NCBI GenBank assembly: GCA_904063045.1
Contig: CAJFCJ010000012.1
Location: 2,428,810 to 2,492,809, forward strand
DNA from: Dimorphilus gyrociliatus
Taxonomy: Eukaryota; Animalia; Annelida
Length of the DNA stretch: 64,000 bases
Direction of reading: 5' to 3'
Position numbers and translations under genes: made by a program. The notes under the pieces are model-generated. The model did no database searches, had not been told where the DNA came from, and worked only from the letters and a program-made list of their open reading frames with translations. This document shows positions 16,678-55,466 of this stretch, one piece after another; position 1 is the first letter of the stretch, and each line of letters begins with the position of its first letter.

Positions 16678-19600
16678 TTAGGCCATCATTGCAGCAAAGA
16701 TAGCTGCTAGAATTAGCGAGATGTTAATAAATATAGCTGCAGCTCCCGCATCACCGTCGTTGAAGAAGATGTTACATTTATCTCCTACGCAGCATTTTTC
16801 ACATGCTGTTGTACCATCAGATGTTTTCTTACAGTGTTCCTCCTTTGTTGAACTAGTACATGTTACATTTCTACATTCTCTTGTAAATGTTGTTACGCCT
16901 CCCTTTTCTAATCTAGCAACCCAGCAGGCGCCACCATTACCGCATTCTTTCAATTTGATGGTGTCAGTTTCATTGACAAAGTTGGATTGTTCCTTTCCGC
17001 AGTTTGCTTCATTTCCAGAACAAGTAAGACATTGGACTGTTCAAAGTTCATAGGAAAAAATAGGTTTTATGAGTAATGAAACAAATGATTATGTATATAT
17101 ATATATACTTACTTGCACATTGTCTGTCATTATCGTGAAGATGATACGCGCTTGAGCATTTATCACATTTAAAGCCATGAACACAAACTCCACAATTTGT
17201 TACTTGATTGGAACTGCACGAAATACATTCAGTTTTATCATCAGATAAAGTGTAGCCGGATTGACATTTGAAGCAACTTGCTTTTCCAGTAGTGTCCGCT
17301 TGTGGAGAACAATCCATGCAATTAGCGAAAGCAGATGTTGAACAGTCTGAAAGAAAATATATTTATTTTAGCCCAAAGCCTATTAACTATAAACATTAAC
17401 TATAAACATAGATGAAAATACAATCACTTTACCTTCGCAAACTCCAGCTTTCAATGTAAATCCTTTTCTACATTTAGTACATACTGATTTATCTGATGCG
17501 GAGGCGGTACAAACGTCACAATTGGCGGGACATGAAGCGCATTGTTTGAATGAACTTCCGTATAGAGCATAGTATTGTTTGCATTGCGAACAGGATACGG
17601 AACCACTGTCAACTGTACATGTTGGACAATTCTTTGGACATTCGCTACATTGTTCTGAGCTCTTTCTGTATCCTTGCATACAATTTGAGCATACAAGAAC
17701 CCCTTTATCGTCTACATCTTTACATTCTGAGCATTGATTTGGACAAGAGTAACATTTTCTATCGGATGTTTTTCTGCCATAATTACTATCACAACTGTTA
17801 ACGTCACATCCAATGACGTCATTTTCGTACGAACATTTGTTACAGTTATCAGGACAAGCTGAAATATTCATTGAAAAATTATATTCAGTAATAATTCATT
17901 CTGTTTTTTTTTCTTCAAATTTTTACCTTCACATTTTGCAGTATTAGAATTCAAAACAAATCTTCCTTTACATTTTGTACAAAGTGTACCAGTTTTATCA
18001 TCGTTCAATTTACAAGTTTCGCAATTTCCTTCGCAAGCTGTAAACATCATTTTTCATAATTATAAAAAATATACTGTTACTTATGGATTATTTGACTTAC
18101 GTAGACATTTTCCATCAGCAGTTGATGATGCGTAACCAGCAATACATGTTGCGCATGTTGTTACTCCTTTAGAATCAATGTTACAAGATGAACAAGGACT
18201 GTTACACGAAACACATTTGTTTCCAGATGTAAACAGTTTGTGTGTGCTCTTACATTCCTTACATTTTGTTTCTTTTGCAACATCATCCCAATCGCAATTT
18301 ACGCAATTACTCGGGCAAGATATACAATTCCTACTACTGTCGAAAGTGAAACCAGAAGCACATTTAGAACATCCTTGACTTCCGTCATTTTTCAAATAAC
18401 ATCTCATACAAGAATCATCGCATTTTACACATGTTCCATCGTCAGATTTTGTGATATATCCATCAATGCAACCAGTTGGAAGGCAATATGTTTGTTCGTT
18501 TTTGAAATAACACTTGGCACAGTTTGATGGACACTCATTACAATCAAAATCTGACCAATCAAGAGCATATCCTGATGTGCATTCTACACATTTCTTTACT
18601 GCTGCATTATCTTGAACACATTTATCACAATTACCTGGGCATTCTATACATTCGTAACTACTGTCAGTTAAACCATAGCTACTGGCGCAATGGAATTGTA
18701 AGCATAGAGTTTCTGTATCACTTTTAGCTCGGCATTTTCCACAATTATCAGGGCATTTTAGGCAATTCTTTTTGGTGGTAAGTTGAAGAACATGAGTGTT
18801 TTCATCACATTTTGTGCATTTGTCTACAACGTCGCCTTCTTTAATTGTACAAGAAAGACATCCATCTCCGCAAGAAACGCATGTTTTTTTATCAACACTT
18901 GGAGCGTATCCCGACTTGCAAACTTGACATTCGTTTGGTGTAATGTCGTCGGGTTTTAGTGAACAAGTGTTACAGTTGTCCATGCATCCAACACATGCTG
19001 TTCTTGCACTGTTCGTCGAAAATCCACTCTCACATTTAGAACACTCCTTTACTTTTGATACTCCTCCTCGATCAACAAAGGAACAAGTTTCACAAAAATC
19101 GTAACAACCATCACAATCCTTTTTATGTTCTTTAAAGATTTTACCAGTTGTACATGAGGTACATTCGACAAGAGTTGCACCACTATATTTGCAAGTTGGA
19201 CATGCATCAGGACATTTTCTACATTGCTTAGCAGCTGTATCCAAATTATAGTTCGATGCACAATCAGAACATTCCGTGGTGGTGAAGGTTTTGTCAACGG
19301 AACAAGTTTTACAATTATTTTCACATTCTGTGCATGTTGTTTTATCATCAGATATTAAATATCCATCGTTGCATGTATCACATTTGGAACTATCTGATGG
19401 ACAGGTTGCGCAGTTGGCCACTTGGCATGTTTGACAAGTAGTTTTTGCAGTATCAGGGAATTTAGTAGGATCTGTACATTCTTCACACTGGGCTTTATTG
19501 GCATCACACTTTTTGCAACCACCAACGGTACATTCCTCACATGTTTTAGTGGCGGATACAAATCTATATCCATCAGCACAACCAGTTGATTTACATGCTG

Positions 19601-22600
19601 CCTTGTCGTTTAGTTCGCAATCATCGCAATTAGTAGCTGTACAAGCTACGCATACACTTGCTGCACCCGCATCAATAGCTTTTCCTTTGACGCAATCTGT
19701 GCATACGTCTGGTGTACCAAAGTCACAGAGTTTACAATTGCTGCCAACAGTACATGGTACACAAGTTTGATCAAGAGCTTTATATCCATGTCCTGTAGGA
19801 CAACCAGTTGGCTTACACTTTGCCTTGTCATTTGGTTCGCAGTCGTCGCAAGGGGCTGTGCAAGCTGCGCATACACTTGCTGCACCCGCATCAATAGCTT
19901 TTCCTTTGTCGCAATCTGTGCATACGGCTGGTGTACCAAAGTCACAGAGTTTACAATTGCTGCCAACAGTACATGGTACACAAGTTTGATCAAGAGCTTT
20001 ATATCCATGTCCTGTAGGACAACCAGTTGGCTTACACTTTGCCTTGTCATTTGGTTCGCAGTCGTCGCAAGGGGCTGTGCAAACTGAGCATACGCTTGAT
20101 GCACCCGCATCAATGGCTCTTCCTTTAGCGCAAGATGTGCATACGGCTGGTGTTGCTTTATCACAGGTTGCACAGTTACTGCCTACTGTACATTGATAAC
20201 AGGTCGCATCAGCCGAATTAAACAGATATCCGGAAGAACATCCAGTTGATGTACATTTTGTCTTGTCAGTTGGTTCACAAACATCACAATTTGTTGCTAC
20301 GCAGGGTTCACAAGTACCCAAGTCTGTTACTGTATATGTAGCTGCACACACACTACATTGATTAGGATCCTTTTCTTTATAAAGACACTTTGTGCAAGGT
20401 GAAGGACAGCTTACACATTTGTTCTTCCTAGTATTTACAACATAGTTGTCATTACATACACTGCACGTTCCATCAGAATTACAAGTGGCGCAATTAGCAG
20501 GACATTTGTTACATTTGAGACCATCGCTTTGAACTTCGTATCCCGTATTGCATTTCGTACATTTTCCAAGTCCTGATAGATCAGTCTTCAAACTGCATTC
20601 AATACAGTTGCTATCAATACCACTACATGCTAAACATTCAGAGTTATCTTTATTCAAGATATATTTGTCGTCGCATTTCAAGCAACCATTTGCCCAAATT
20701 CCATCTCCAGCTTCATTCGGAACACACTTGATACAATTTGAAATAGTATCGGCACAAGCTTTACACGTTTGTAAATCGTGTTCCAAAGTTCTGCCACTTG
20801 AACATTTCTCTTCATAGCATTTTCCATTTCCATCACATTTGTCACAATTTCCGGTACAAGCGGTACAACTATCACCATTTTTACCATATTTATTCATGCA
20901 GACGATACATTTTGGACTGCCATCAACAATTTTACAATGAGCACAACCTTCTCCGCAGGCTGTAAAACAATATATTTCAATTAGGGTTTTCCTTGTTTTT
21001 TCTCTTTATTTGCTTTACAAATTGAAAATATGAAGACAAAGAAGACTTACATGAACATTGTCCACTTTCATCAACAAAACCATAGTTAACTTCGCATTCG
21101 GAAGCAAAGCATCGAGAGACGCCACTGACATCTTTACACAGTTTGCAGTTTGATGGACAACCTTTAGTTGAAAAATAACAATAATGAGAATATGTCGAAT
21201 AGAAGGCATTTGAAGCTTTTATATATTGACTAATTAATTGTTATCGCTTCATATTTATCATTTTATCGGAGATATATTTGCATGAAAATTGAACTAACCT
21301 AAACAAGTTTTATCAGAATCTTTGATGACGTATTTAGCCTCGCAGTTCGTACATTCGGCTCTGTTGTTCTTCCATTGACACGAGTTACAGTTGGATGGAC
21401 ATGCTTGACATTTTCCGTCACTGTCTTTTATATACTTGGCTTTACACAGCGTACACAATGTCGATTTACCAGATAGAACGCAAGTGAGACAGTTGGATGG
21501 ACATTGTGTGCATGTTGTTGAGTCGGCAGAAAGTTGATAATACGATTGGCATTCAGTGCATGTTGTTCCATCTGGATTGTTGGAATCTTCCGTACATTTA
21601 TTACAGAATTCTTTGCAGGCCATACAAGTTTTGTCAGCAGATCTAACAGTATAACCAACAACACATTCCGAACATTTGGCAACCCCATTATCATTAGTGC
21701 ATGTAGCGCAATTGGAAGGGCAGGATAAACATGTTCCATCACTATTTTCTACATAACGATCTCTACATTTCGAGCAAAACGTTTTCTTCGTATCTGATTT
21801 GAAAGTACATTCGAGACAAGCCGAAGGACACGAATCGCATTTCTTTGTTTCGGTGTTAAGAGCAGTTCCTTTATCACAAGACGAACAAACGAGATTATCG
21901 TTAGAATCGGCACTACAAACAGCACAATTGGAACTGCATGAAGAGCATGATTTATCAGACTTGAGACCGTATCTTTTGAAGCACTGTGAACAGACTGTAG
22001 CTGCACCACTGACTGAACAAGTTTGGCAGAAACTGGGACATTCTGAAAATGAAAAAATTTTATAATATGAAGAACAGAAGAAGAATACAAATGTGAAGAA
22101 AAACATACTCATGCATTTTTTGTCATCTGTCAAAGGAGCACTAAAATCGTAGCAGTCGTAACATACTGGTTTACTATTTGTAACGTTACAAAATCTGCAC
22201 GTACTGTCATCCGAGCAAGCTGTATTGACAAAAAATTGGTATATAAGCTTCAATAAATATTAAACGGCGAAGAAGAAAGATAGATAGATAGATTGATAAT
22301 ACAAATAATCATTTACCAATGCATTTTTGTGTTGCGGGATCTACACCATAACCATGTACGCATTGAAGGCATTTTGTGTTGTCACCAGTTCCAGTTAATT
22401 CGCATTTCATACATTTGTCTGAGCAGTCTGATATTTAAATAAGCAGTTAATGAAAATAATGATGATGAAGGAGATAATGATAAAACTCTTTTTTTTTATT
22501 GATTTGAATAATGAAAACTTACCGATACACTTTTTCTGATCAGTGGATATAACTTGATTTGTGGCGCACTTCGCACATCTCAGGTCTCTTTTTGCACAAG

Positions 22601-27759: not shown

Positions 27760-30700
27760 TTAGGCCGTCAAAGCAGCAACCACAGCTGATAGAATTAGCG
27801 AAACATTAATAAATATTGCCGCAGCTCCCGCGTCACCATCGTTAAAGAAGATGTTACATTTATCTCCAACACAACATTTTTCACAAACCGTTGTACCATC
27901 CGATGTTTTCTGACAGTGTTCCTCCTTTGTTGAACTACTACATGTCACGTTTTTACATTCTCTTGTAAATGTTGTTACACCTTCCTTTTCTAATCTGGCA
28001 ACCCAACAGGCACCTCCTTTCCCGCATTCTTTTAATTTGATTGTATCAGTTTCATTGACAAAATTGGATTGTTCCTTTCCACAGTTTGCTTCATTTCCAG
28101 AACAAGTAAGACATTGGACTGTTCAAAATTCATGAGAAAAACCAGTCATATGAAGAATAATGGGATTGAATATGTATATATACTTACTTGCACATTGTCT
28201 GTCATTATCGTGAAGATGATACGCGCTTGAGCATTTATCACATTTAAAGCCATGAACACAAACTCCACAATTGGTTACTTGATTGGAACTGCACGAAATA
28301 CATTCAGTTTTATTTTCAGATAAAGTGTAGCCGGATTGACATTTGAAGCAACTTGCTTTTCCAGCAGTGTCCGCTTGTGGAGAACAATCCATGCAATTAG
28401 CGAAAGCAGATGTTGAACAATCTAATAAAACCAAAATACATTGTACCTCATTTAAGTGGTTGATGACTTTTTAAGATAATAAATAATTTATAACCTTCGC
28501 AAGCTCCTGCTATAATTGAAAATCCTTTTTTACATTTGGTACATACTGATTTATCGGATGAGGTTGCTGAGCAAACATCGCAATTAGGGGGACAAAAAGT
28601 GCACTGCTTAAAGGAATCGCCGAACAAAGCATAGTACTGTCTGCATTTCGTACAAGATATTGAACCTCTATCGATTGCACAATTTGGACAATTCTTTGGA
28701 CATTCGCTACATTGTTCTGAGCTCTTTCTGTATCCTTGCATACAATTTGAGCATACAAGAACCCCTTTATCGTCTACATCTTTACATTCTGAGCATTGAT
28801 TTGGACAAGAGTAACATTTTCTATCGGATGTTTTTCTGCCATAATTACTATCACAACTGTTAACGTCACATCCAATGACGTCATTTTCGTACGAACATTT
28901 GTTACAGTTATCAGGACAAGCTGAAATATTCATTGAAAAATTATATTCAGTAATAATTCATTCTGTTTTTTTTTCTTCAAATTTTTACCTTCACATTTTG
29001 CAGTATTAGAATTCAAAACAAATCTTCCTTTACATTTTGTACAAAGTGTACCAGTTTTATCATCGTTCAATTTACAAGTTACGCAATTTCCTTCGCAAGC
29101 TGTAAACATCATTTTTCAAAATTATAAAAAATATACTGTTACTTATGGATTATTTGACTTACGTAGACATTTTCCATCAGCAGTTGATGATGCGTAACCA
29201 GCAATACATGTTGCGCATGTTGTTACTCCTTTAGAATCAATGTTACAAGATGAACAAGGACTGTTACACGAAACACATTTGTTTCCAGATGTAAACAGTT
29301 TGTGTGTGCTCTTACATTCCTTACATTTTGTTTCTTTTGCAACATCATCCCAATCGCAATTTACGCAATTACTCGGGCAAGATATACAATTCCTACTACT
29401 GTCGAAAGTGAAACCAGAAGAACATTTAGAACATCCTTGACTTCCGTCATTTTTCAAATAACATCTCATACAAGAATCATCGCATTTTACACATGTTCCA
29501 TCGTCAGATTTTGTGATATATCCATCAATGCAACCAGTTGGAAGGCAATATGTTTGTCCGTTTTTGAAATAACACTTGTCACAGTTTGATGGACAAGCAT
29601 TACAATCAAAATCTGACCAATCAAGAGCATATCCTGATGTGCATTCTACACATTTCTTTACTGCTGCATTATCTTGAACACATTTATCACAATTACCTGG
29701 GCATTGTGTACATTCGTAACTACTGTCAGTTAAACCATAGCTACTGGCGCAATGGAATTGTAAGCATAGAGTTTCTGTATCACTTTTAGCTCGGCATTTT
29801 CCACAATTATCAGGGCATTTTAGGCAAGTCTTTTTGGTGGTAAGTTGAAGAACATGAGTGTTTTCATCACATTTTGTGCATTTGTCTACAACGTCGCCTT
29901 CTTTAATTGTACAAGAAAGACATCCATCTCCGCAAGAAACGCATGTTTTTTTATCAACACTTGGAGCGTATCCCGACTTGCAAACTTGACATTCGTTTGC
30001 TGTAATGTCGTCGGGTTTTAGTGAACAAGTGTTACAGTTGTCCATGCATCCAACACATGCTGTTCTTGCACTGTTCGTCGAAAATCCACTGTTACATTTG
30101 GAACACTCATTTACTTTTGATGCTCCTCCTCGATCAACAAGGGAACAAGTTTCACAATTTGTTTTACAACCAACACAACTCTTTTTATCATCATCTAAGA
30201 TTTTACCAGTTGGACATGAGGTACATTCGACAAGAGTTGCACCATTATGTTTGCAAGTTAGACATGAAGAAGGACATGGTTCACATTTGTTATCACCTGT
30301 ATTGAAATTAGCGTCCGATGCACAACCAGAACAGAGTGGTATAAAATCTGGTTTCCATGTACATGTTTTACAGTTATCTTCACATTTTGTGCATGTTGTT
30401 TTATCATCAGATATTAAATATCCATCATTGCATGTATCACATTTGGAGCTATCTGATGAGCAGTCTTTGCAGTTAGCCACTTGGCATGTTTTACAAGTTT
30501 TACTAGCTGTTATGAAGTTAAATCCAGCATCGCAACCAGTTGATTTACACTTCGTCTTGTCGTTAAGTTCGCAATCATTGCAATTAGCAACTGTGCAAGC
30601 TACGCAGTTGCCTGAATCGATAGCTTTTCCTTTATCGCAATCTGTGCAAGTTCCAAGAGTACCGGTAACACATAATTTACAATCAGTTGCCGTGCATGGT

Positions 30701-33700
30701 TCACATTCTTTACTACCAGCATTATATGCAGTTCCAGCATTGCAACCAGTAGATTTACACTCCGCCTTGTTGGTTAGTACGCAATCATTGCAATTAGCAG
30801 CTGTGCAAGCTACGCAGTCGTTTCCATCGATAGCTTTTCCTTTATCGCAATCTGTGCAAGTTCCAAGAGTACCGGTAACACATAATTTACAATCAGTTCC
30901 CGTGCATGGTTCACATTCTTTACTACCAGCATTATATGCAGTTCCAGCATTGCAACCAGTAGATTTACACTCCGCCTTGTTGGTTAGTACGCAATCATTG
31001 CAATCAGCAGCTGTGCAAGCTACGCAGTTGCCTCCATCAATAGCTTTTCCTTTATCGCAATCTGTGCAAACTGCAAGATCAGCGGTAACACATAATTTAC
31101 AATCAGTTCCCGTGCATGGTTCACAGATTTCAGTACCAGCATTAAATGCAGTTCCAGCATTACAACCAGAAGATTTACACTTGTCCTTGTCACCTTCTTT
31201 GCAATCATTGCAATGAGCAGCTGCACAAGCTACACAAGTGGAATCACTAGCGATAAACATAAACCCAGTTGAACAGCCGGTAGTTTTGCACTTGGTCTTA
31301 TCAGTTGGTTCACACTCATCACAATTTTGTACGGTGCATGGTTCACAAGTACCCGAATCTGTTGGTGTATATTTAGGAGCACATACACTACATTGGTCGG
31401 GATCCTTTCCTTTATAAGTACAGCTTTTGCAAGGTGAAGGACAACTGATACATTTGTTTTTCCTACTATTCACCACATAGTCATCATTACATACACTACA
31501 CGTTCCATCAGAATTACATTTGTTGCAATTATCTGGACATTTGTTACATTTGAGACCATCGCTTTGAACTCCGTATCCCGATTTACATTTCGTACATTTT
31601 CCAAGTCCCGATAGATCAGTCTTCAAACTGCATTCAATACAGTTGCTATCAATACCACTACATGCTAAACATTCAGAGTTATCTTTATTCAAGATATATT
31701 TGTCGTTGCATTTCAAGCAACCATTTGCCCAAATTCCATCTCCAGCTTCATTCGGAACACACTTGATACAATTTGAAATAGTATCGGCACAAGCTTTACA
31801 CGTTTGTAAATCGTGTTCCAAAGTTCTGCCACTCGAACATTTCTCTTCATAGCATTTTCCATTTCCATCACATTTGTCACAATTTCCGGTACAAGCGGTA
31901 CAACTATCACCATTTTTACCATATTTCTTCATGCAAACAATACATTTTGGACTGCCATCAACAATTTTACAATGAGCACAACCTTCTCCGCAGGCTGTAA
32001 AACAATATATTTCAATTATAAGTTTTCCTTGTTTTTTCTCTTTATTTGCTTTACAAATTGAAAATATGAAGACAAAGAAGACTTACATGAACATTGTCCA
32101 CTTTCATCAACAAATCCATAGTTAACTTTGCATTCAGAAGCATAGCATCGAGAGACGCCGCTGACATCTTTACACAGTTTGCAGTTTGATGGACATCCTT
32201 TAGTTGAAAAATAACAATAATGAGAATATGTCGAATAGAAGGCATTTGAAGCTTTTATATATTGACTAATTAATTGTTATCGTTTCATATTCATCATTTT
32301 TTCGGAGATTTATTTGCATGAAAATTGAACTAACCTAAACAAGTTTTATCAGAATCTTTGATGACGTATTTAGCCTCGCAGTTCGTACATTCGGCTCTGT
32401 TGTTCTTCCATTGACACGAGTTACAGTTGGATGGACATGCTTGACATTTTCCGTCACTATCTTTTATATACTTGGCTTTACACAACGTACACAATGTCGA
32501 TTTACCAGATAGAACGCAAGTGAGACAGTTTAATGGGCATTGCGTGCATGGTGTTGAACCAAAAGAAAGTTGAAAATACGATTGGCATTCAGTGCATGTT
32601 GTTCCATCTGGATTGTTGGAATCTTCCGTACATTTATTACAGAATTCTTTGCAGGTCATACAAGTTTTGTCAGCAGATCTAACAGTATAACCGACGATAC
32701 ATTCCGAACATTTGGCAACTCCATTATCATTAATGCATTTAGCGCAATTGGAAGGGCAGGATAAACATGTTCCATCACTATTTTCTACATAACGATCTCT
32801 ACATTTCGAGCAAAACGTCTTCTTTGTATCTGATTTGAAAGTACATTCGAGACAAGCCGAAGGACACGGATCGCATTTCTTTATTTCGGTATTAAGAGCA
32901 GTTCCTTTATCGCAAGATGAACAAACGAGATTATCGTTGGAATCGGCACTACAAACAGCACAATTGGAACTGCATGAAGAGCATGATTTATCAGACTTGA
33001 GACCGTATCTTTTGAAGCACTGTGAACAGACTGTAGCTGCACCACTGACTGAACAAGTTTGGCAGAAACTGGGACATTCTGAAAAATAAATGAATATGAT
33101 AAAGAAATGGAAAAGAATGTAAGATTTAAAAAAGACTTACTGATGCATTTTTTGTCATCTGTCAAAGGTGCACTATAATCGTAGCAATCGTAGCAAACTG
33201 GTTTACCATGTTTAATATTACATAATTTGCATGAATTATCTTCGGAACAGGCTGCAAGTAATTAGACTAAAAATGAAATAGTTTGACAAGAGTAAAGCGA
33301 TCTGAAAATCAAAATTCTGTTTGGCTATTGCATTCGTATTTTTAGCATTATTTTTTTGGAAATTGTAAGACATTCGGGAAAAAGTAAGTATGTAAGAGTC
33401 AGGCGAAAAAATGTGAATAGAGCTGTTTTCAATTTGACTAGTTGAAGAAATAGGTTTAAAGGGAAAAAGCTTGTATAACAAGTTTGTTTTATTGAAAGAA
33501 TGTTTCAAAACGAAGTATTACTATTTTCTTAATTTTCATGAATAATGACATCATAATCTCTTAAATTGGAAACATTGCTTGAACTTTTTTTATCTACATA
33601 AATGACTTTTGTCCATGACAAAAAAGACTATCTGTTTTTTTAAAATTAGTAATGCCATACTGATTAGGTATGAAAAATTTCTTCCATATTCTTTCATGAA

Positions 33701-37110: not shown

Positions 37111-40100
37111 ACATTTCTACATTCTCTTGTAAATGTTGTTACGCCTCCCTTTTCTAATCTAGAAACCCAACAGGCGCCACCATTGCCACATTCTTTTAAT
37201 TTGATTGTATCAGTTTCATTGACAAAGTTGGATTGTTCCTTTCCGCAGTTTGCTTCACTTCCAGAACAAGTAAGACATTTCACTGTTCAGAGGAAAAATG
37301 AGTTATATATGTAATGAAAAGAGTAATAATGTATGTATACTTACTTGCGCATTCTCTATCATTCTTGTAAAGATGATACTCACTTGAACATTTATCACAT
37401 TTGAAGCCGTGAACACAAACTCCACAATTCGTTACTTGATTGGAACTACACGAAATACATTCAGTTTTATAATCAGATAAAGTGTAGCCTAGTTGACATT
37501 TGAAGCAACTTGCTTTTCCAGTACTATCAACTTGTGGAGAACACTCCATGCAATTAGCAAAAGCAGATATTGAACAATCTAATTAAGCAATACATATTGT
37601 AGGTCATTTAACAAGTTGATGATATTTTAAGATAGTAAATATATAATCACCTTCGCAGGCTCCTGATCTAATTGAAAATCCCGTTCTACATTTGGTACAG
37701 ACTGAATTATAGAATGAAGTAGCAGAGCAAACATCGCAATTAGGGGGACAAAAAGTGCACTCCTTAAAAGAATCTCCGAACAAAGCATAGTACTGTCTGC
37801 ATTTCGTACAAGTTATTGAACCTTTCTCAATTGCACAGTTCGGACAATTCCTCGGACATTCGCTACATTGTTCTGTACTTTTCCTAAATCCTTGCATACA
37901 AGTTGAACATACAAGAACTCCTTTATCGTCTAAATCTTCACAAACTGAGCAGTGATTTGGACAAGCATAACATTTTCTATCGAATGTCTTTCTGCCAAAT
38001 TTATAATCACAACTGTTGACGTCGCAACCAATGACGCCATTTTGAATCGAACATTTTTTACAGTGATTTGGACATGCTGAAATGTTTTGAATTAAATTAA
38101 ATTGAATTGTACAGGAAAATTCCTTTCGTAGAAATTACCTCTGCAGTTTCCAACATCCAAATTCAGAATAAACCTTGGTTTACATTCAGAACAAAGTGTA
38201 CCAGTTTTAGCATCATTCAATTGACAAGTTAGACAATTTTCATCACAAGCTGTGGGAATAGTTTTTTTCACATATGCAAAAAAAGATTATAACATCAGTA
38301 ACTTACGTAGACATTTTCCACCATCAGTTGATGAAGCGTAATTAGTAATACATGTTGCGCATGTTGTTACTCCTTTCGAATCAATGTGACAAGATGCACA
38401 GGGACGATTACAGGACACACATTTATTTCCAGATGTAAACAGTTTATGTGTGCTTTTACATTGCCTACATTTCGTTTCTTTTGCAACATCATCCCAATCG
38501 CATTTTACGCAATTACTCGGACAAGATACACAATTCCTACTAATGTCGAAAGTGAAACCAGAAGAACATTTAGAACATCCTTGACTTCCGTCATTTTTCA
38601 AATAACATCTCATACAAGAATCATCGCATTTTACACAAGTTCCATCGTCAGATTTAGTGATATATCCATCAATACAACCAGTTGGAAGACAATACGTTTG
38701 TCCATTTTTGAAATAACAATTATTACAGTTTGTAGGACAAGCATTACAATCGTAATCTGTCATGTCAAGAGCATATCCTGATGTGCATTCTACACATTTC
38801 TTTACTGCTAAATTGTCTTGAATACATTTATCGCAATTACCTGGGCATTGTGTACATTCGTAACTGCTGTCGGTTAAACCATAACTACTGGCGCAATGAA
38901 ATTGTAAGCATAGAGTTTCTGTATCACTTTTAGCTCGGCATTTTCCACAATTATCAGGACATTTCAAGCAAGTCTTTTTCGTGATCGGTTCTAAAACATG
39001 GGTGTTTTCATTACATTTTGTGCATTTGTCAACAATATTTCCTTCTTTAATGTTACAAGATAAACAATCATTTCCGCAAGAAATGCATGACGTTTTGTCA
39101 AGACTTGGAGAGAATCCAGACTTGCAACCTTGACACTCGTTTGGTGTATTGTCGACTTTTAGTGAACAAGTTAAGCAGTGAGCCATACATGGAACGCATG
39201 ATGTTTTCGCACTGTGAACCGAATATCCACTCTCACATTTAGAACACTCCTTTACTTTTGATACTCCTCCTCGATCAACAAAGGAACAAGTTTCACAATT
39301 TGCGGGACAATATACACAACTCTTTTTATCTTCGGCAAAAATTTTACCATATGTACATGACATACATTCGACAAGATTTGCACCAGTATGTTTGCAAGTT
39401 GGACATGAAGAAGGACATGTTCTACATTGCTTAGCAGCTGTATCGAAATTAGCGTTCGATGCACAACCAGAACATTCCGTGGTGAAGGTTTTGTCAACGG
39501 AACAAGTTTTACAATTATCTGTACATTTTGTGCATTCTGTTTTATCATAAGATATTAAATATCCGTCGGCACATATATCACATTTGGAGCTATCTGACGA
39601 ACAAGCGGCGCAGTTGGCTACTTGGCAGGTTTGACAAGTAGTTTTTGTAGTGTCAGGGAATTTATTAGGATCTATACACTCTTCACACAGGCCTTTATTG
39701 ACATCACACTTTTTGCAACCTGCAACACTACATTGTTCACAAGTTCTAGTGGGCCAAATGAATCTGTATCCAAGAGCACAGCCGGTTGATTTACATGCTG
39801 CCTTGTCATATGTTTCGCAATCGTCGCAATAAGTAGCTGTACAAGCTTCACAGTTGACTCCATCAATAGCTTTTCCTTTGGGGCATTCTGTGCATTGATG
39901 TGGTGTAACATAAAGACACTTTTTACAATTACTAGCTACCGAACACTGTATACAGATTTTATCAGGTTTGAATGAATATCCGTCTGCACAACCAGTTGGT
40001 TTGCATGCATGCTTGTTATATTCTTCGCAATCGTCGCAATTGCCTGTACAAGTTACGCATACATTTCCTGCTCCAGCGTCAATAGCTCTTCCTTTATCAC

Positions 40101-42978
40101 AAGATGTGCATTCATTTGGCGAATCAGCATAACATTTTTTACAACTACTAGCAGCAGTACATCTCACACAGGTTTTATCAGAAGATTTAAATGAATATCC
40201 ACTAGGACAACCAGTTGGTTTGCATGCATTCTTGTTATATTCTTCGCAATCTTCGCAATTGCCTGTACAAGTTACGCATACATTTCCTGCTCCGAAGTCA
40301 ATGGCTCTCCCTCTATGGCAAGATGTGCATACAGCTGGTGTAGCTTTATCACAGGTTGCACAGTTACTGGCAGGTATACATTGATAACAAGTTTCATCAA
40401 AGAAGCTGAATAAAAATCCGAAAGCACAGCCGGCTGCAGTACATTTAGTTATGTCTATTGGGTTACAAACATCACAATTTTGTGCGTTGCAGGGTACACA
40501 AGTACAAAATTCTGTTAGTGTATATGTAGCTGCACACACACTACATTGATTAGGATCTTTTTCATTATAGAAACACTTTGTGCAAGGAGAAGGACAGCTT
40601 ACACATTTGTTTTTCCTAGTATTTATCACGTAGTTTTCATTGCAGACACGACACGTTCCATCAGAATTACATTTGTCGCAATTATCAGGACACTTGTTAC
40701 ATCTAAGACCATCGCTTTGAACTCCGTATCCCGTATTGCATTTCGTACAGTGGCCAAGTCCCGATAGATCAGTCTTTAAACTGCATTCAATACAGTTGCT
40801 ATCAATACCACTACATGCTAAACATTCAGAGTTATCTTTATTCAAGATATATTTGTCACGGCATTTCAAGCAACCATTTGTCCAAATTCCATCTCCAGCT
40901 TCATTAGGAACGCATTTAATACAATTCGAAATAGTATCGGCACAAGCTTGACACGTTTGTAAATCGTGTAGCAAAGTTCTGCCACTCGAACATTTCTCTT
41001 CATAGCATTTTCCATTTCCATCACATTTGTCACAATTTCCGGTACAAGCGGTACAACTATCACCATTTTTACCATATTTATTCATGCAGACGATACATTT
41101 TGGACTGCCATCAACAATTTTACAATGAGCACAACCTTCTCCGCAGGCTGTAAAACAATATATTTCAATTAGGGTTTTCCTTGTTTTTTCTCTTTATTTG
41201 CTTTACAAATTGAAAATATGAAGACAAAGAAGACTTACATGAACATTGTCCACTTTCATCAACAAATCCATAGTTAACTTCACATTCGGAAGCATAACAT
41301 CGAGAGACGCCATTAACATCTTTACATAATTTGCAGTTTAACGGACAAACTATAATTGAGAAAGGCAAACAATGAGAATATGTAAGATTAAATGAGATTT
41401 ACAAGTGATGTCTACAAAATTATCAATCACTTATCTGTATTACCTAAACAAGTTTTATCAAAATCTTTGATGACGTATTTGGCTTCGCAGTTCGTACATT
41501 CGGCTCTGTTGTTCTTCCATTCACAAGAGTTACAGTTGGATGGACATGCTTGGCATTTTCCGTCACTATTTTTTATATACCTGTCTTTACACAACGTACA
41601 CAACGTCGATTTACCAGATAGAATGCAAGTAAGACAGTTGGATGGACACTGTGTGCATGGTGTAGAGCCAAAAGAAAGTTGATAATAGGATTGGCATTCA
41701 GTGCAGGTTGTGTCGAGTTTATCATAGTCCTCTATACATTTATTACAGGAACGGTGGCAAGATATACAATTTTTGTCAGTAGATCTAATAGTATAACCAA
41801 GGTCACATTTCGAACATTTCGGAACTCCATTATCATTTGTGCATATGGCACAATTGGAAGGGCACGGTAGACAGATTCCATCAGTATTTTTTACATAGCC
41901 GTCGCTACATTTCCAGCAAAACGTCTTCTTAGTATCTGACTTGAAAGTGCATTCAAGACAAGCGGAAGGACACGAATCGCATTTCTTTGTTTCGATATTA
42001 AGAGCAGTTCCTTTATCGCAAGATGAACAAACTAGATTATTGTTAGAATCGGCACCACAAACAGCACAATTGGAACTACATGAAGTGCAGGATTTATCAG
42101 ACCTGAGACCGTATCTTTTGAAGCATTGTGAACAGACTGTATCTGAACCACTGACTGAACAAATTTGGCAGAAACTGGGACATTCTGGAGATGAAAAAAT
42201 ATTTTAAAATGAAGAAAATAAAGAAGGTGTTTGTATTAAAAAACCATACTCAAGCATTTGTTGTCAGCTGTCAAAGGAGCGCTATAATCTTAGCAATCGT
42301 GGCAAACTGGTTTACCTTGCTCAATTTTGCAGAGTTTGCATGAATAATCTTCGGAACAAGCTATAAAGAATTAAAATGAATACGTAGTTTTAGTTTCTGA
42401 TGAAATTATTTGATTTGCTTTTCATTTCAACTTTGGAATTAAATGCTTAACTTCTATCGACATAAATGACTGTATGGCATAAGAAAATGGAACTCTCTGT
42501 TCTTTGAAATGAGTAATGCAAGAGCAAATATGCATGAAGAACTTCTTTGATAAAATACTAATATCATGAAAGATATTGATGTAGGAAGAGATTAAGAATA
42601 AAAGACAAAATTTTACCAAAGCATGTGTTACTGTCGGGATCTAGACCATAACCAGCAGAACATTCAAGGCATTTTGTGGCATCACCAGATCCAGTCAAAC
42701 TGCATTTCATACAGTTTGCGGTACAGTCTGAAATGAAGAAAAAGATTGAATGGAAAATAAAATTAATGATAGAGAAATGAGGATAGAAATAATGAAAACA
42801 TACCAATGCATTTTTTTTGATCAGTTGATAAAACTTGATTAGAGGCGCACTGCAAACACCTCAAGTCTTTATCGCTACAAATTTGACAATTCGCAATATC
42901 TTCACAGCCAGATGTTGTTGCGAATTGCAGATTTGTAGCCTTTAGCCAAATTATTATTAAAAATATATAAAATTTCAT
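36924..42978 (-). CDS. Array copy C: full-length structure but with an in-frame TAA in exon 3 (recent pseudogene, or expressed by exon skipping)
   Basis: E1 starts at 42978 (MKFYIFLIIIW). E3 (42250-42360) has TGC-TAA-GAT at 42292-42290 where the other copies have TGC-TAC-GAx. E4 41444-42184 (741 nt), E6 38307-41147 (947 codons) and E7-E10 are all open with canonical splice sites. Confidence 0.8.
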
Positions 42979-44049: not shown

Positions 44050-44810
44050 TCTTATTTGCAGATTGCGCAATTCATTACTTTCAAAGTTTGTCAAGTAGTT
44101 TTTGCAGTGTCAGGGAATTCAACACCACTTGCAAATTGTTCTTTTGTTCGAAATCAGGGCAGTTAGTATACAGTAGATATCACGTATTGCATTTCGTACA
44201 ATTTCCAAGTCCCGATAGATCAGTTTTTAAACCGCATTCATTACAGTTGATATCAATACGACTGCATTCTGAACATTCAGAGTTATCTTTATTCAAAAAA
44301 TATTTTTCATTTGGAACACACTTAATACAATTCGCACCGTTGCAAATTTGCACAGTTGCTTATGTTTGAAATTATAAGATATTCGGGAAAATTTAAAGAC
44401 AAACCTCAATTTTAGAAATACGTTTAAAAGAAGAGAAACTGGTATAATATGATTTTTTTTATTGGAAGAATGTCTCAAAAAGAAATATTAATATATCTCT
44501 ATTTTTCATTTTGAACTATGAAATTATATGCTGAACTTCTATCTACATAAATGACTGTATGACATAAGAAAATGGAACTTTCTGTTCTTGAAAATGAGTG
44601 AAGCAATAATGATTTTGCATGATAAATTTCTTTGATATCATTTAATGAAAGATGTAGATTTAACTTGATTAGAGGCGCAAATTAAACACCTTAAGTCTTT
44701 TTTGCTACAAATGTGATAGTTTGATATATCGTCACAGGCAGTTGTAGTTGCAGATTGCATGTGTTTAGCAGTAAGCCAAATTGTTACTACTAACAGATAT
44801 AATTTCAGAT
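44050..44810 (-). pseudogene. Array remnant psi2: exon 1 with destroyed start codon plus scattered exon-6 fragments
   Basis: 44650-44808 translates as LKLYLLVVTIWLTAKHMQSATTTACDDISNYHICSKKDLRCLICASNQV, with the ATG disrupted (caatATctGaaa versus caatATGaaa in B and D) and a Cys->Tyr change. 44185-44330 matches CIKCVPNE..NKDNSEC..KTDLSGLG and 44085-44115 matches PDTAKTTC. Confidence 0.8.
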
Positions 44811-46030: not shown

Positions 46031-49000
46031 TTAGGCCATCATAGCAGCAACAACACCTAATAAAACTAGCGAGATATTAATAAATATAGCTGCAGCTCCC
46101 GCAATACCATCGTTAAAGAAGATGTTGCATTTATCTCCTACGCAGCATTTTTCACATGCTTTTGTACCATCAGATGCTTTCTTGCAATGTTCCTCCACTG
46201 TTGAACTACTACATGTCACATTTCTACATTCTCTTGTAAATGTTGTTACGCCTCCCTTTTCTAATCTAGAAACCCAACAGGCGCCACCATTGCCACATTC
46301 TTTTAATTTGATTGTATCAGTTTCATTGACAAAGTTGGATTGTTCCTTTCCGCAGTTTTCTTCATTTCCAGAACAAGTAAGACATTTCACTGTTCATAAT
46401 TCATGAGAAAAACAAGTCATATAAAGAATAATGGGATTGATTATGTATAGATACTTACTTGCGCATTGTCTGTCATTATCATAAAGATGATACTCGCTTA
46501 AACATTTATCACATTTGAATCCATGAACACAAACTCCACAATCGGTTACTTGATTGGAACTGCACGAAATACATTCAGTTTTCTCATCAGATAAAGCGTA
46601 ACCGGATTGACACTTGAAGCAGCTTGCTTTTCCAGTACTATCCACTTGTGGAGAACAATCCATGCAATTAGCGAAAGCAGATGTTGAACAATCTAATAAA
46701 ATCAAAATACATTGTACATCATTTAATTGGTTGATGACTTTTTAAGATAATAGATATTTATAACCTTCGCAAGCTCCTGCTCTAATTGAAAATCCTTTTT
46801 TACATTTAGTACATACTGATTTATCGGATGAAGTTGCTGAGCAAACATCGCAATTAGGGGGACAAAAAGTGCACTGCTTAAAAGAATCTCCGAACAAAGC
46901 ATAGTACTGTCTGCATTTCGTACAAGTTATTGAACCTTTCTCAATTGCACAGTTCGGACAATTTCTCGGACATTCGCTACATTGTTCTGTACTTTTCCTA
47001 AATCCTTGCGTACAAGTTGAGCATACAAGAACTCCTTTATCGTCAACATCTTCACAAACCGAGCATTGATTTGGACAAGCGTAACATTTTCTGTCCGATG
47101 TTTTTCTGCCAAATTTATCATCACAACTGTTGACGTCGCAACCAATGACGCCATTTTGAATCGAACATTTTCTACAGTGATTCGGACAAGCTGAAATGTT
47201 GTGAATTGAATTGAATTGTACAGGAAAATTCCTTTCGTAGAAATTACCTCTACAGTTTCCAACATCCAAATTCAGAATAAACCTTGGTTTACATTTGGTA
47301 CAAAGTGTACCAGTTTTAGCATCATTTAATTTACAAGTCACACAATTCCCATGACAAGCTATAAAAACAATTTTTTTTTCATATACACAAAGAAAGATAA
47401 TAAGAATCACTTTTCAACAAGAATATAAATGATTTATTTCACTTACGTTGACATTTTCCATCAGCAGTTGATGAAGCGTAACCAGCATTACATGTTGCGC
47501 ATGTTGTTACTCCTGTGGCATCAATGTTACAGGATGCACAAGGACTAGTACATGACACACATTTGTTTCCAGATGTAAACAGTTTGTGTGTGCTCTTACA
47601 TTCCTTACATTTTATTTCTTTTGCAACATCATCCCAATCGCATTTTACGCAATTACTCGGACAAGATACACAATTCCTACTAATGTCGAAAGTGAAACCA
47701 GAAGAACATTTAGAACATCCTTGACTTCCGTCATTTTTCAAATAACATCTCATACAAGAATCATCGCATTTTACACAAGTTCCATCGTCAGATTTAGTGA
47801 TATATCCATCAATACAACCAGTTGGAAGACAATATGTTTGTCCGTTTTTAAAGTAACACTTGTTACAATTTGTAGGACAAGCATTACAATCGAAATCAGA
47901 CCAGTCAAGAGCATATCCTGCATTGCATTCTACGCATTTCTTTACTGCTGAATTATCTTGAATACATTTATCGCAATTACTTGGGCATTGTGTGCATTCA
48001 TAACTGCTGTCGGTTAAACCATAACTACTGTCGCAATGAAATTGTAAGCATAGAGTTTCTGTATCACTTTTAGCTCGGCATTTTCCACAATTATCAGGAC
48101 ATTTCAGGCAAGTCTTTTTCGTGGTTAGTTGAAGAACATGGGTGTTTTCATTACATTTTGTGCATTTGTCTACAACATCGCCTTCTTTAATTGTACAAGA
48201 AAGACATCCATCTCCGCAAGAAACGCATGTTGTTTTATCAAAGCTTGGAGCGTATCCCGACTTGCAAACTTGACATTCGTTTGGTGAATTATCGGCTTTT
48301 AACGAACAAGTGTTACAGTTAGTCATACATTTAACACAGGATGTTTTCGCACTGTGAACCGAATATCCACTGTTACATTTGGAGCACTCCAACACTTTTG
48401 ATACTCCTCCTTGATCAACAAAGGAACAAGTTTCACAATTTCCTGGACAAGAAACACAACTCTTTTTATCTTCAGCAAAGATTTTACCAGTTGTACATGA
48501 GCTACATTCGACAAGAGTTGCACCAGTATGTTTGCAAGTTGGACATGAAGAAGGACATGTTCTACATTGCTTAGCACCTGTATCGAAATTAGCGTTCGAA
48601 GCACAACCGGAACATTGCGTTATAAAGGTTTTGTCAACTGAACAAGTTTTACAATTATTTTCACATTTTGTGCATGATGTTTTGTCATCAGATATTAAAT
48701 ATCCGTCGGCACATATATCACATTTGGAGCTATCTGATTGGCAATTTAGGCAGTTGGCTACTTGGCAGGTTTGACAAGTAGTTTTTGCAGTATCAGGGAA
48801 TTTAGTAGGATTTGTACATTCTTCACACTGGGCTTTATTGGCATCACACTTTTTGCAACCTGTAACAGCACATTGCTCACATGTTTTAGTGGCGGTTACA
48901 AATCTATATCCAGCAGCACAACCAGTTGATTTACATGTGGCCTTGTCGTTTATTTCGCAGTCATCACAGTTAATAGCTGTACAAGCTACGCAATTAGTTC

Positions 49001-52000
49001 CATCAATGGCTTTTCCTGTAGGGCAATCGATACATTGCATAAGAGTATTAACGTCACAAAGTTTACAATCATTTGCAGCACAAACATCACACGTTTCACG
49101 TATAGGATTATAAACACTTCCAGCGTTGCATCCAGTTGATTTACATTTGTATATGTCTTTACAATCATTACAATAAGTTGCAAAACATGTTTCACAACGT
49201 TGAGTTAAAGGATTATAAACACTTCCAGCAATGCATCCAGTTGATTTACACTTGTACTTATCTCGTAGTTCACAATCATTGCAGTTTTGAGTTGCACAAG
49301 CTACACAATCGTCTCCATCAATAGTAAATCCTTTAGTGCAATCTGTGCATCGTCCCGGTGTGTATGGGTCACAGGCTTTACAGTTATTGCCAATACAAGA
49401 AACACAAGCGGCATCACTAGCTCTAAAAAAATACCCACTTTTACAACCAAATGATGTACATTTTGATACATCGGTTGATTCACAAAAATCACAATTTTGT
49501 GCCGTGCAGGGTACACAAGTTCCCAATTCTGTTAGTGTAAATGTAGCTGCACACACACTACATTGATTAGGATCTTTTTCATTATAGAAACACTTTGTGC
49601 AAGGTGAAGGACAGCTTAAACATGTGTTCTTCTTAGTATTTACAACATAGTTTTCATTGCAGACACTACATGTTCCATCAGAATTACAATTGGCACAATT
49701 AGCAGGACATTTGTTACATTTGAGACCATCGCTTTGAATTTCGTATCCATAATTGCATTTCGTACATTTTCCAACTCCTGATAGATCAGTCTTCAAACTG
49801 CATTCAATACAGTTGCTATCAATACCATTACATGCTAAACATTCAGAGTTATCTTTATTCAAGATATATTTGTCACGGCATTTCAAGCAACCATTTGTCC
49901 AAATTCCATCTCCAGCTTCATTAGGAACGCATTTAATACAATTCGAAATAGTATCGGCACAAGCTTTACACGTTTGTAAATCGTGTAGCAAAGTTCTGCC
50001 ACTCGAACATTTCTCTTCATAGCATTTTCCATTTCCATCACATTTGTCACAATTTCCGGTACAAGCGGTACAACTATCACCATTTTTACCATATTTATTC
50101 ATGCAGACGATACATTTTGGACTGCCATCAACAATTTTACAATGAGCACAACCTTCTCCGCAGGCTGTAAAACAATATATTTCAATTAGGGTTTTCCTTG
50201 TTTTTTCTCTTTATTTGCTTTACAAATTGAAAATATGAAGACAAAGAAGACTTACATGAACATTGTCCACTTTCATCAACAAATCCATAGTTAACTTCAC
50301 ATTCGGAAGCATAACATCGAGAGACGCCATTAACATCTTTACATAATTTGCAGTTTAACGGACAAACTATAATTGAGAAAGGCAAACAATGAGAATATGT
50401 AAGATTAAATGAGATTTACAAGTGATGTCTACAAAATTATCAATCACTTATCTGTATTACCTAAACAAGTTTTATCAAAATCTTTGATGACGTATTTGGC
50501 TTCGCAGTTCGTACATTCGGCTCTGTTGTTCTTCCATTCACAAGAGTTACAGTTGGATGGACATGCTTGGCATTTTCCGTCACTATTTTTTATATACCTG
50601 TCTTTACACAACGTACACAACGTCGATTTACCAGATAGAATGCAAGTAAGACAGTTGGATGGACACTGTGTGCATGGTGTTGAGCCAAAAGAAAGTTGAA
50701 AATACGGTTGGCATTCAGTGCATGTTGTTCCATCTGGATTGTTTGAATCTTCTGTACATTTATTACAGAATTCTTTGCAGGTCATACAAGTTTTGTCAGC
50801 AGATCTAACAGTATAACCAACAACACATTCCGAACATTTGGTAACTCCATTATCATTAGTGCATGTAGCGCAATTGGAAGGGCAGGATAGACATGTTCCA
50901 TCACTATTTTCTACATAACGATCTCTACATTTCGAGCAAAACGTCTTCTTAGTATCTGATTTGAAAGTACATTCGAGACAAGCCGAAGGACACGAATCGC
51001 ATTTCTTTGTTTCAGTGTTAAGAGCAGTTCCTTTATCGCAAGATGAACAAACTAGATTATCTTCGGAATCTGCACTACAAACAGCACAATTGGAAGTGCA
51101 CGAAGAGCATGATTTGTCAGACTTGAGACCGTATCTTTTGAAGCATTGTGAACATACTGTATCTGAACCACTGACAGAACAAATTTGGCAGAAACTGGGA
51201 CATTCTGAAAAACAAGAAAATATTATATGAAGAATATAGAGAAAGTGTTTGTATTCAAAAAACCCACTGATGCACTTGTTGTCATCTGTCAAAGGAGCAC
51301 TATACTCGTAGCAATCGTAGCAAACTGGTTTTCGATGTGTAATATTACAGAATTTGCATGAATTATCTTCGGAACAGGCTGTAAATAATTAGAGTAAAAA
51401 TGAAATTCTATGGCAGGAGTAAAGCAATCTAAAAAATCCAAATTTTCCTTGCGTATTGAGCTCGTATTTTTACTATAATTTTTGTTGGAAATTATAAGAA
51501 ATTCCGGGAAAAGTTGAAGGTGAAATGAGATGTATAGGAAAAAATGTGTATATAACTGTCTTCAGCTTGAGTACTTGTTATAATGAGTTTAAAGGGAAAA
51601 AAACGTGTAAGATATGATGATCATCGGAAGAATGTTTCAAAGTAAAGTATTAAATATATCGTTCAGTTTTTTAAATAATGAAATTATATTCTGATAAATT
51701 GAAGAAATTGCTTAAATTTCATTTATCTGCATAATTGACTTTTTTCCATGAAAAATAAAACCAGCTGTCTCTTAAGTTGAGTAGTACAATACTTATTTGG
51801 TATGACTGATATTCTTTCATGAAGCATATACAGACTAAAATGAAAAAAACCTTAAGAAAAATAGATAAACATTTACCAAAGCAGGTTTTGGAGTCGGGAT
51901 CTACAGCATAACCAGCAGAGCATGCAACGCATTGTGTTTTATCACCAGACCTAATCAAACTGCATTTTATACAGTTTGCGGTACAATCTGAAATTAAGAA

Positions 52001-53233: not shown

Positions 53234-55466
53234 TTAGACTTTCATAGCAGTAAAAATAGCTGCTAGAATTAGCGTAATGTTCATAAATATACCCTCAGCT
53301 CCGGCATCGCCATTGTTAAAGAATATATTACATTTATCTCCTACGCAGCATTTTTCACATGCTTTTGTACCATCAGATGTTTTCTTGCAGTGCTCCTCCA
53401 CTGTTGAACTACTACATGTCACATTTCTACATTCTCTTGTGAATGTTGTTATGCCTCCCTTTTCTAATCTAGAAACCCAACAGGCACCGCCGTTACCTCA
53501 TTCTTTCAATTTGAATGTATCAGTTTCATTGACCAAATTGGATTGCTTCTTTCCGCAATTAGCTTCATTTCCAGAACAAGTAAGACATTTGACTGTTCAG
53601 AGTTCATAAAAGCATGGGTTATAAAAGTATTGAAAAAAGTGATTTTGCATATATGTTTACCTGAGCATTGAGTGTCATTTTCGTAAAGGAGAATAATGGT
53701 TGTTTTAGAGGAATATTAAATATTATGTTGTTGGCTTTTCACGACATACACAATGTCATTTTGTTCAAAGTAAAACGAGATTTTTTTAGTTTTTTTTACT
53801 TACCTGACAACGCAAATGATTTTCATAAACAGTTGTTACTCGAATGAAATTTTCTGGTTTTTTTTTTAAGAAATTCAACTCTTTGTTTATGCCTGACATC
53901 ATAACTTTTTATCTAATGAGAAAATAAAGAAAGACGTCTCGATTTGATACCAAACACAAGTACTAAATCATTTATTATTCGCAATACTCAATGGACTTGT
54001 TACTTCCTTGTAAAGCTATACAAGATGAAGGTTACGCAGCTTCATTATTAATCTAATTACTTGAAGAGGTTAGTGATTTACAATCGTTTCCTCAAAGATT
54101 GCCTACACATGTTGAAATCCTATGAAGGTTTCCGCTAACGATGTCTATAGCTGTGTCTATTGATTGTTTTATGTGATTTGTATTGCTATGCTTGTTTTGA
54201 TAATGCTCAACACAAGACGAAAGAATATTCAACACAAACTGTTTGTTTATTATATCGCTGTGGAGATTACAAATGCAGAAAATTAAGTGCTTATTGTTTA
54301 ATTCATCATGTAAAATTACAAATTGCCAGATGACAACAAATGCCTGAGTATGTTTTTTTTATGTTAACACTCTTTTTAAATGAAAAAATGAAGATCATTT
54401 TCTTAATGATAATATTTTTTCATTTTCAAGAATGTCCCAGTTTCTGCCAAACTAATCTGATAAATTATGCTCTTTAGGCAGTTCCAATTGTGCTGAAATG
54501 TTTTGAATTAAATTGAATTGAATTGTAGAGGAAGTTTCCTTTCATAGAAATTACCTCTACAATTTCCTACATCGAAATTCAGAATAAACCTTGGTTTACA
54601 TTCAGTACAAAGTGTGCCAGTTTTAGCATCATTCAATTGACAAGTTAGACAAGGGTTGGGGAAACCTTGGAGCGAATCCAGACTTGCAAACTTGACATTT
54701 ATTTGGTGAATTATCGACTTTCAATGAACATGTTAAGCAGTTAGCCATACATGCAACACATGGTGTTTTCGCATTGTGCAACGAAAATTCACTGTTACAC
54801 CTGGAACACACCAATACTTTTGATGGTCCTCCTTGAACAGCAATTAAGCAAGTTTCACAATTTGGGGGACATGTTCTACATATCTTGGCTACTTCATCGA
54901 AATTAGTATTCAATTCACAACCGGAACATTGCGTTGTGAAGGTTTTCTCAACTGAACAAGTTTTACAATTATTTGTACATTTTGTGCATGACGTTTTATC
55001 ATCAGATATTGAATATCCATCATTGCATGTATCACATTTTGAACTATCTGATTGGCAGTAGACTACTTGGAGGCTTTGACAAATAGTTTTTGTAGCATCC
55101 GGAAATTCGGCAATATTTATTCACTCTTCGCATGGCAGTAAGGGCCTGTACAAGCTATCCAGTTGGCTCCTTCTAAAGCTTTTCCTATATGGCATTCTGA
55201 GCATTGTCCAAGAGCGCCAATAGCACAAGCTGTACAACCAAATGTGATGCAATGATGACAGGCATCAGTGCCATCAAATACACTTCCATAGTAACAAGCA
55301 GTTGGTTTACATTTGGATTTTTCGTTGAGTATGCAATCTTTGTAGTTAGTAGCTGTACAGACAACGCAATCTGTTCCATCAAGGCTTTTCCTATATCGCA
55401 ATCTGTACATTGTCCTGGTGACTCCTGGGTCACAAGCTTTACAGTCATTGACGGTACAAGCAACAC
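53234..55466 (-). pseudogene. Array remnant psi4: rearranged, 5'-truncated copy
   Basis: E10 has TGC->TGA at 53500-53498. Only the end of E9 remains. E7 is fused to mid-E6 at ~54650-54660 through a GGGTTGGGGAAAC filler. Frameshifted E6 pieces run to ~55466, and an inverted E3/intron/E4 piece lies at 54327-54495. Confidence 0.88.

Follow-up and report, generated by a model that had tools for sequence, protein, structure and literature searches.

Interlocus gene conversion around an old repeat core as the probable source of the divergent exon 6 centre in four tandem paralogues of Dimorphilus gyrociliatus

Four tandem paralogues, here called A to D, lie on the minus strand of a 64,000-nucleotide stretch of the genome of the annelid Dimorphilus gyrociliatus (contig CAJFCJ010000012.1, positions 2,428,810 to 2,492,809; the whole of this stretch is referred to as the window), and they follow the order D-C-B-A along transcription. 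Each has a long exon 6 whose central part, the core, differs between the copies. A preliminary description of the window had taken this core to be hypervariable and a likely specificity region, in which each copy builds its own module expansion and selection keeps the frame. We find that the contrast of the core with its flanks and with intron 5 arises mostly because interlocus gene conversion acts outside the core. Our preferred explanation, to which we give a probability of about 0.65, is a concerted evolution of the flanks by conversion around an old repeat core that escapes conversion and has an in-register turnover of its own units. It may be noted that the window sequence comes from one 78-Mb genome assembly and that the protein and family searches reported below were made with single exons as queries.

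The entire exon 6 is a chain of modules of ~36 amino acids with six cysteines each, spaced as C x3-6 C x2 C x5-13 C x2 or 4 C x10-14 C x2. It is open without a stop in all four copies and is bounded by AG and GT, and at these borders the codon counts (Table 1) match exactly those of the preliminary description. The modules were sorted into type X with a C-x4-C pair, type Y with a C-x2-C pair and a KGKAID motif, and type Z, which is the CTVGGCKKC... module. The variable part comprises modules 7-14, with 8, 8, 8 and 7 modules between the flanks in A, B, C and D respectively, at coordinates close to those given earlier. Two ancient core types are present, alpha in A and C and beta in B and D, alternating along the array. 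The alpha cores have in common the Cys spacing 5-2-7-2-13 / 3-2-7-4-12 and the motif CKPTGC, and the beta cores the spacing 4-2-7-2-10 / 4-2-7-4-12 and the motif CKSTGC. The repeat content of each core was also as previously reported, that is two near-identical units in A, three units and no Z module in B, two diverged units in C and two adjacent CNDC..KCKSTGC modules in D, the last being sister X modules. For these repeats Tandem Repeats Finder gave a period of 219 in A (19578-20153, 2.6 copies, 92% matches), of 210 in B (30523-31233, 3.4 copies, 90%) and of 219 in C (39916-40330, 1.9 copies, 85%). In all three genes they are arranged head-to-tail inside the coding exon, with high identity and a length that is a multiple of 3. 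As for the claim that each copy has its own expansion, the middle does differ in module type and order, but A and C have the same order. B has gained one X and lost Z, and the constant total of 26 despite this exchange suggests selection on the length of the rod that the modules form.

A maximum likelihood (ML) tree of the 31 core modules was used to follow the history of the units. Module 7, the last X and Z, which are the modules at the edges of the core, cluster by position in this tree, and the inner modules cluster by gene and not by position, with support of 96/94 for B10+B12, 100/99 for C09+C11, 97/92 for D09+D10 and 98/94 for B09/11/13. A09 and A11 are identical at the DNA level. Since the module order of A and C is the same and yet the clustering is by gene, their inner units must have been homogenised or re-duplicated after the genes separated. 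The earlier proposal of module-level recombination within each gene is thus borne out by the module phylogeny (96-100% bootstrap), and the gene-wise clustering fits what in-register unequal exchange would leave behind. Units of 210 and 219 bp that recombine in register keep the reading frame automatically. Therefore, the open frames need no special selection, and the part of the preliminary description that invoked it can be dispensed with. Within the X+Y units the positions of Cys, Gly, DK..CK.TGC and KGKAID are fixed, and the variation falls in the hairpin loops.

On aligning the window with itself by BLAST, the flanks of exon 6 match between copies at 84-93% and the alignment fails across the core. 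The flanks had been described as nearly identical, which applies only to the first ~130 codons or so and to some of the 3′ third. Nearer the core the identity drops little by little, and divergence among the copies is moderate in modules 15-19. Intron 5 (91-92 nucleotides) is, as was stated before, almost base-identical, with A, C and D the same and B different at 3 positions. The conclusion drawn from this, that the core is less conserved than an intron, is valid with respect to intron 5, but for intron 6 (63, 63, 57 and 88 nucleotides in A-D) no alignment is possible between A/B, C and D, and in the intron upstream of exon 5 the identity of A/B to C/D is 68-70%, which is about equal to that of the core. 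When identity was calculated in a sliding manner along the whole 5.6-kb units, values of 97-100% were found in tracts that ignore the exon-intron borders, as against 68-72% in unconverted introns. The identical runs reach 713, 397, 301 and 279 nucleotides, whereas the overall identity is 82-88%. The near-identity of intron 5 is therefore the result of a conversion tract and not of constraint on the intron. The contrast between flank and core that a sliding window displays is likewise real, but it is owed mostly to conversion tracts outside the core. The parsimony-informative sites switch accordingly: in the flanks of exon 6 the grouping AB|CD has 53 sites and AC|BD only 1, whereas in the core AC|BD has 41 and AB|CD 14 (Fisher P=1e-16 for the contrast of flank and core). 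This switch of topology, together with the tracts, is the signature of an interlocus gene conversion or recombination that spares the core. Hypermutation or diversifying selection inside the core is not the main source of the contrast.

A separate observation concerns the region downstream of exon 6 (17416-17641 in A, and its equivalents), where B matches D at 92-95%, whereas the identity of A to any other copy is only 66-76%. It follows that gene B is a mosaic, A-like in some parts and D-like in others.

The age of the core was judged from nonsynonymous (dN) and synonymous (dS) divergence, calculated pairwise over the six copy pairs by NG86, YN00 and ML. The 5′ flank has a dN of 0.04-0.08, a dS of 0.10-0.32 and a dN/dS of 0.20-0.45. 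In the 3′ flank, for which the nearly identical A-B pair was left out, the values are 0.04-0.09, 0.18-0.38 and 0.14-0.39 in the same order. The core has a dN of 0.31-0.51, a dS of 0.55-1.5 and a dN/dS of 0.25-0.71. Because dN and dS are both raised several-fold, the core is chiefly older than the flanks and only somewhat less constrained. The dN/dS of module pairs within the core is 0.17-0.55 and often significantly below 1, and no significant case of dN/dS >1 was found in the core by NG86, YN00 or ML or for any module pair. The diversifying signal that the preliminary description had looked to dN/dS for is thus not seen with any of the three methods.

A distant paralogue, E, on another contig (C214, 6380-9196, forward strand) allows the same exon to be viewed over a longer time. 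It is 56% identical and has the same exon of 26 modules, with conserved ends and a different centre. Against E, for which dS is saturated throughout, dN is 0.13-0.34 in modules 1-4 and 20-26 and 0.41-0.94 in modules 5-19, and in the latter the amino-acid identity is 21-54%, of which 17% comes from the cysteines alone. The raised dN in modules 5-19 means that the centre of the exon is fast-evolving at the protein level even without conversion. The layout of conserved, variable and again conserved parts is thus an old property of the family, with a variable zone wider than the core of modules 7-14.

Also, an exon-wide scan gave one peak with dN/dS >1, and only one, in modules 16-18 just 3′ of the core (alignment columns 600-680, from the end of module 16 to the start of module 18). 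Between A and B this patch has 43 nonsynonymous and 4 synonymous changes (43N:4S), with a dN/dS of 3.3 by NG86 and 1.8-2.1 by YN00 and ML. The private changes of the other two copies are 3:1 in C and 1:4 in D. Compared with the rest of the exon the excess has P=6e-6, and compared with neutrality P=0.008, a value uncorrected for the ~12 windows. We regard this putative excess as a lead and not as a result.

Several points weigh against an old core that conversion has passed by. The core dS is near saturation and the positional homology of repeated modules is uncertain; also, pairwise dN/dS is a rough measure that may hide positively selected sites. The youngest repeats differ purely by nonsynonymous changes (3N:0S between units 1 and 2 of A, 7N:0S between units 2 and 3 of B; pooled P=0.08), and unit 1 of B against units 2/3 has a dN/dS of 1.6, which is not significant, so that diversification may be under way in the recent repeats. 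Selection against conversion would equally give rise to a stable divergence peak with converted sequence on either side. The block-duplication history set out below rests on four genes and two relics, and the sequence evidence on these cores comes from a single assembly of one species. Some of these points are what would be expected if, as the preliminary description had it, the core were a specificity region in which diversifying selection favours new module arrangements and purges the conversions that would erase them. The core indeed lies within the part of the protein that evolves fastest even where conversion plays no role, its dN/dS of 0.25-0.7 is above the 0.14-0.45 of the flanks, and beside it modules 16-18 have 27N:1S private changes in A and B. 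The variable positions are in hairpin loops on a fixed scaffold of Cys and Gly, and the furin-like (FU) repeats of R-spondin bind their partners through such hairpins, an analogy that may be counted on the same side. Newly arisen protein repeats often experience relaxed or positive selection for a time (Persi, Wolf and Koonin 2016, PMC5120217); the worm repeats are like these in that the youngest units differ only in amino acids and the older ones are under purifying selection, and unlike them in that the counts are too small for significance (10N:0S). Yet no comparison within the core is significantly above 1 and many are significantly below it, dS is raised as much as dN, so that age and not rate explains most of the contrast, and the module number is conserved where a variable one would be expected. 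We therefore think such a role possible for the core but rather unlikely as the explanation of its divergence. Similarly tentative is the thought that the alternating cores and the modules 16-18 patch might be recognition surfaces of a hitherto undescribed annelid surface-recognition system (for gametes, self/non-self or microbes), kept apart between the paralogues by selection against conversion as the remainder of the rod becomes homogenised.

The two remaining alternatives concern the history of the cores and the assembly itself. If the flanks displayed the true history, ((A,B),(C,D)), two later events confined to the core, either conversions or double crossovers, would have transferred it, one between A and C and the other between B and D, and most of the 5.6-kb unit does support AB|CD with only ~0.9 kb supporting AC|BD. 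However, a recent exchange of cores should leave them less diverged than the flanks. The dS of the core is 0.57-0.97 for A-C and 0.57-1.26 for A-C and B-D together, which is not below the divergence of AB from CD (flank dS 0.2-0.4, intron identity 68-72%), so that homogenised flanks around an old core are favoured over a recent swap. Such transfers would also have to occur twice independently with the same boundaries, and the flanks contain several 100% identical tracts of unequal extent, a pattern typical of recent conversion that happened repeatedly; we consider this history improbable. Less credible still is an artefact in which near-identical units of 210-219 bp were mis-assembled and the module counts and orders are unreal. 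Assembly is difficult for units with 97-99% identity, but all four exons have an open frame of 906-953 codons and an intact Cys spacing, and what distinguishes the copies is mostly old substitutions and module type, not noise in copy number. No haplotig with a core of different length turned up when the genome of the worm was searched, and no alternative contig carries the core.

The explanation that we prefer, conversion of the flanks around an old core, may be pictured in the following way. A block of two genes, one alpha and one beta, would have been duplicated, giving core types that alternate along the array. Since then the flanks, together with their introns, would be overwritten again and again by interlocus gene conversion, in which the partners are for the most part adjacent genes (A with B and C with D), and modules 7-14 would stay out of the exchange between genes and so retain their old divergence. 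The core may resist conversion as it is too diverged and out of register, or as conversion in it is selected against. Meanwhile in-register unequal exchange or intragenic conversion would bring about the duplication, loss or homogenisation of the inner units of two modules (219 bp in alpha, 210 bp in beta); this turnover within each gene would make the inner modules gene-specific, and units that are multiples of three would preserve the frame. All of this would take place where the protein is least constrained (modules 5-19), with purifying selection relaxed around a scaffold of fixed cysteines and with an unchanging total of 26 modules (25 in D). The processes combined in this mechanism are all known ones. 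On this account the array would be a clean animal example of a 'hypervariable' block that needs neither hypermutation nor strong positive selection, where conversion erases the differences on both sides of an island that is built of repeats and has fallen out of register. It also calls for caution, since an exon less conserved than an intron is not in itself a sign of selection in tandem arrays. Modules 5-19, and especially 16-18 of A and B, would be the places to test for binding by these giant annelid surface proteins.

That conversion makes tandem paralogues diverge in a mosaic fashion has already been described for HMA4 in Arabidopsis halleri (bioRxiv 10.1101/2025.10.29.685298), and Caenorhabditis paralogues are another case of it under interlocus gene conversion (PMC3966223). 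The present array is like both in having tandem copies, intron-crossing tracts of identity, an uneven rate of conversion along the gene and a diverged island. It differs in that the island is here a tandem array of modules with an intragenic homogenisation of its own, and in that two types of island alternate. With regard to the repeats, the FLO and ALS genes of yeasts are adhesin genes with repeats in frame. Yeast surface adhesin genes are known to carry in-frame minisatellites and megasatellites (PMC2566889), and they have in common with exon 6 the long in-frame tandem units in the middle of the protein, conserved ends and a turnover of units by unequal recombination. The yeast repeats are, however, Ser/Thr-rich stalks of widely variable number, whereas the worm units are disulfide-rich pairs of folded modules with a total of 26 (25 in D).

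The first exon of copy A encodes a signal peptide, and at the end of its last exon are a Ly6-like CCxxDxCN motif and a hydrophobic C-terminal tail that has no charged cytoplasmic end. Because of the signal peptide, the Ly6-like end and this tail, the product is secreted and probably anchored by glycosylphosphatidylinositol (GPI). AlphaFold2 models of modules 6-15 and of one X+Y unit (predicted local distance difference test, pLDDT, of 82 and 88 respectively) consist of all-beta hairpins. In a Foldseek search with the X+Y unit, Fu1-Fu2 of R-spondin was ranked on top, at a weak E of 0.03-0.1, a probability of at most 0.94, 54 columns at 2.9 A and TM-scores (template modelling scores) of 0.35-0.47. 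The search with the 361-amino-acid model of the rod is usable only for its local matches to FU and EGF-like (epidermal growth factor) repeats, as global scores are meaningless for a flexible rod. Going by these models, the modules of exon 6 look like furin-type repeats. The likeness is in small disulfide-stapled beta-hairpin modules, here predicted, placed in series, and the difference is in the six Cys per ~36 amino acids and the 26 modules in one exon. None of the Pfam furin-like families matched the core or the flanks of exon 6 at E<=10. The whole exon and four pieces of it gave only sub-threshold Pfam matches to cEGF and to Giardia VSPs (variant-specific surface proteins, PF03302; 18.3 and 15.6 bits, 12-17 bits for exon pieces, all below the cut-off of 31.4). 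With the VSPs and other CXXC-rich surface proteins of protists the worm proteins have in common the dense CXXC, a surface location (here predicted), multigene families and this weak profile similarity. However, VSPs have a transmembrane helix with a CRGKA tail in place of the Ly6-like end and GPI-type tail, and the present case is an animal gene with introns and no sign of switching.

Table 1. Coordinates of the features of the array (positions are those of the window; nt, nucleotides)
Feature	Position	Strand	Remarks
Exon 6, copy A	18101..20959	-	2859 nt, 953 codons, 26 six-Cys modules; AG/GT borders, Cys spacing
Exon 6, copy B	29163..31994	-	944 codons, 26 modules
Exon 6, copy C	38307..41147	-	947 codons, 26 modules and one extra Cys
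Exon 6, copy D	47447..50164	-	906 codons, 25 modules
Core A, alpha type	19428..20303	-	X Y X Y X Y X Z; no self-BLAST alignment to other copies
Tandem 219-bp (73-amino-acid) X+Y units of A, two	19644..20081	-	3 of 219 nt differ, all nonsynonymous; X modules identical
Core B, beta type	30487..31338	-	X X Y X Y X Y X, without Z; three 210-bp units at 30598-31227
Core C, alpha type	39628..40491	-	X Y X Y X Y X Z; diverged units (dS 0.55 from one to the other)
Core D, beta type	48768..49508	-	X Y X X Y X Z; the two X modules side by side are sisters
Conversion tract, A = C and D, 279 nt	20800..21078	-	End of exon 5, whole intron 5 (20960-21050), first ~160 nt of exon 6
Conversion tract, C = D (49968-50680), 713 nt	40951..41663	-	Spans exons and introns
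Conversion tracts, A = B (28684-29420), 397 nt and 301 nt	17622..18358	-	Intron 6 included
Modules 16-18 patch, A	19038..19280	-	Putative excess of amino-acid changes, private 13N:0S
Modules 16-18 patch, B equivalent	30100..30342	-	Private changes 14N:1S
Relic of modules 3-4 between C and D	44171..44332	-	Internal deletion and TGA stop; dead remnant of another copy
Relic alpha-like core module beyond D	55294..55410	-	CKPTAC, one Cys changed to Tyr

A literature search on this family in Dimorphilus found nothing relevant. In a full-library search 363 proteins were found at E<=0.001, the top ones being the paralogues DgyrCDS14553 and DgyrCDS14780 of the same worm (37%) and proteins of Paralvinella (26-34%). 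Neither this search nor a word search found an orthologue of exon 6 in a close species, and no protein in the library is at least 50% identical. The Paralvinella palmiformis homologue LSH36_391g02056 has, at residues 625-766, a tandem duplication of 71 amino acids that is its own, comprises two modules and is 92% identical; the duplication of two modules is therefore recurrent in the family. Beyond D the window also has a partial 3′ end (52784-53688) that is most like C (94.8%). Together with the core module at 55294-55410 it looks like the remains of a putative fifth copy. As this 3′ end is C-like and the core module carries the alpha-type CKPT motif, the alternation of alpha and beta would fit the relics beyond D as well.

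A few other features of the window may be mentioned. A scan for transfer RNA genes gave no match. An open reading frame (ORF) of 403 amino acids on the forward strand opposite the core of B (30005-31216) was dismissed as a gene, the likeliest reading being that the antisense strand of this repeat, which is rich in Cys, Thr and Ala, has few stops. Two long ORFs (525 and 281 amino acids) of an unrelated gene are present between copies A and B on the minus strand (24047-26592), and because of them the spacing between A and B is 11 kb as opposed to 9.1 kb elsewhere in the array.

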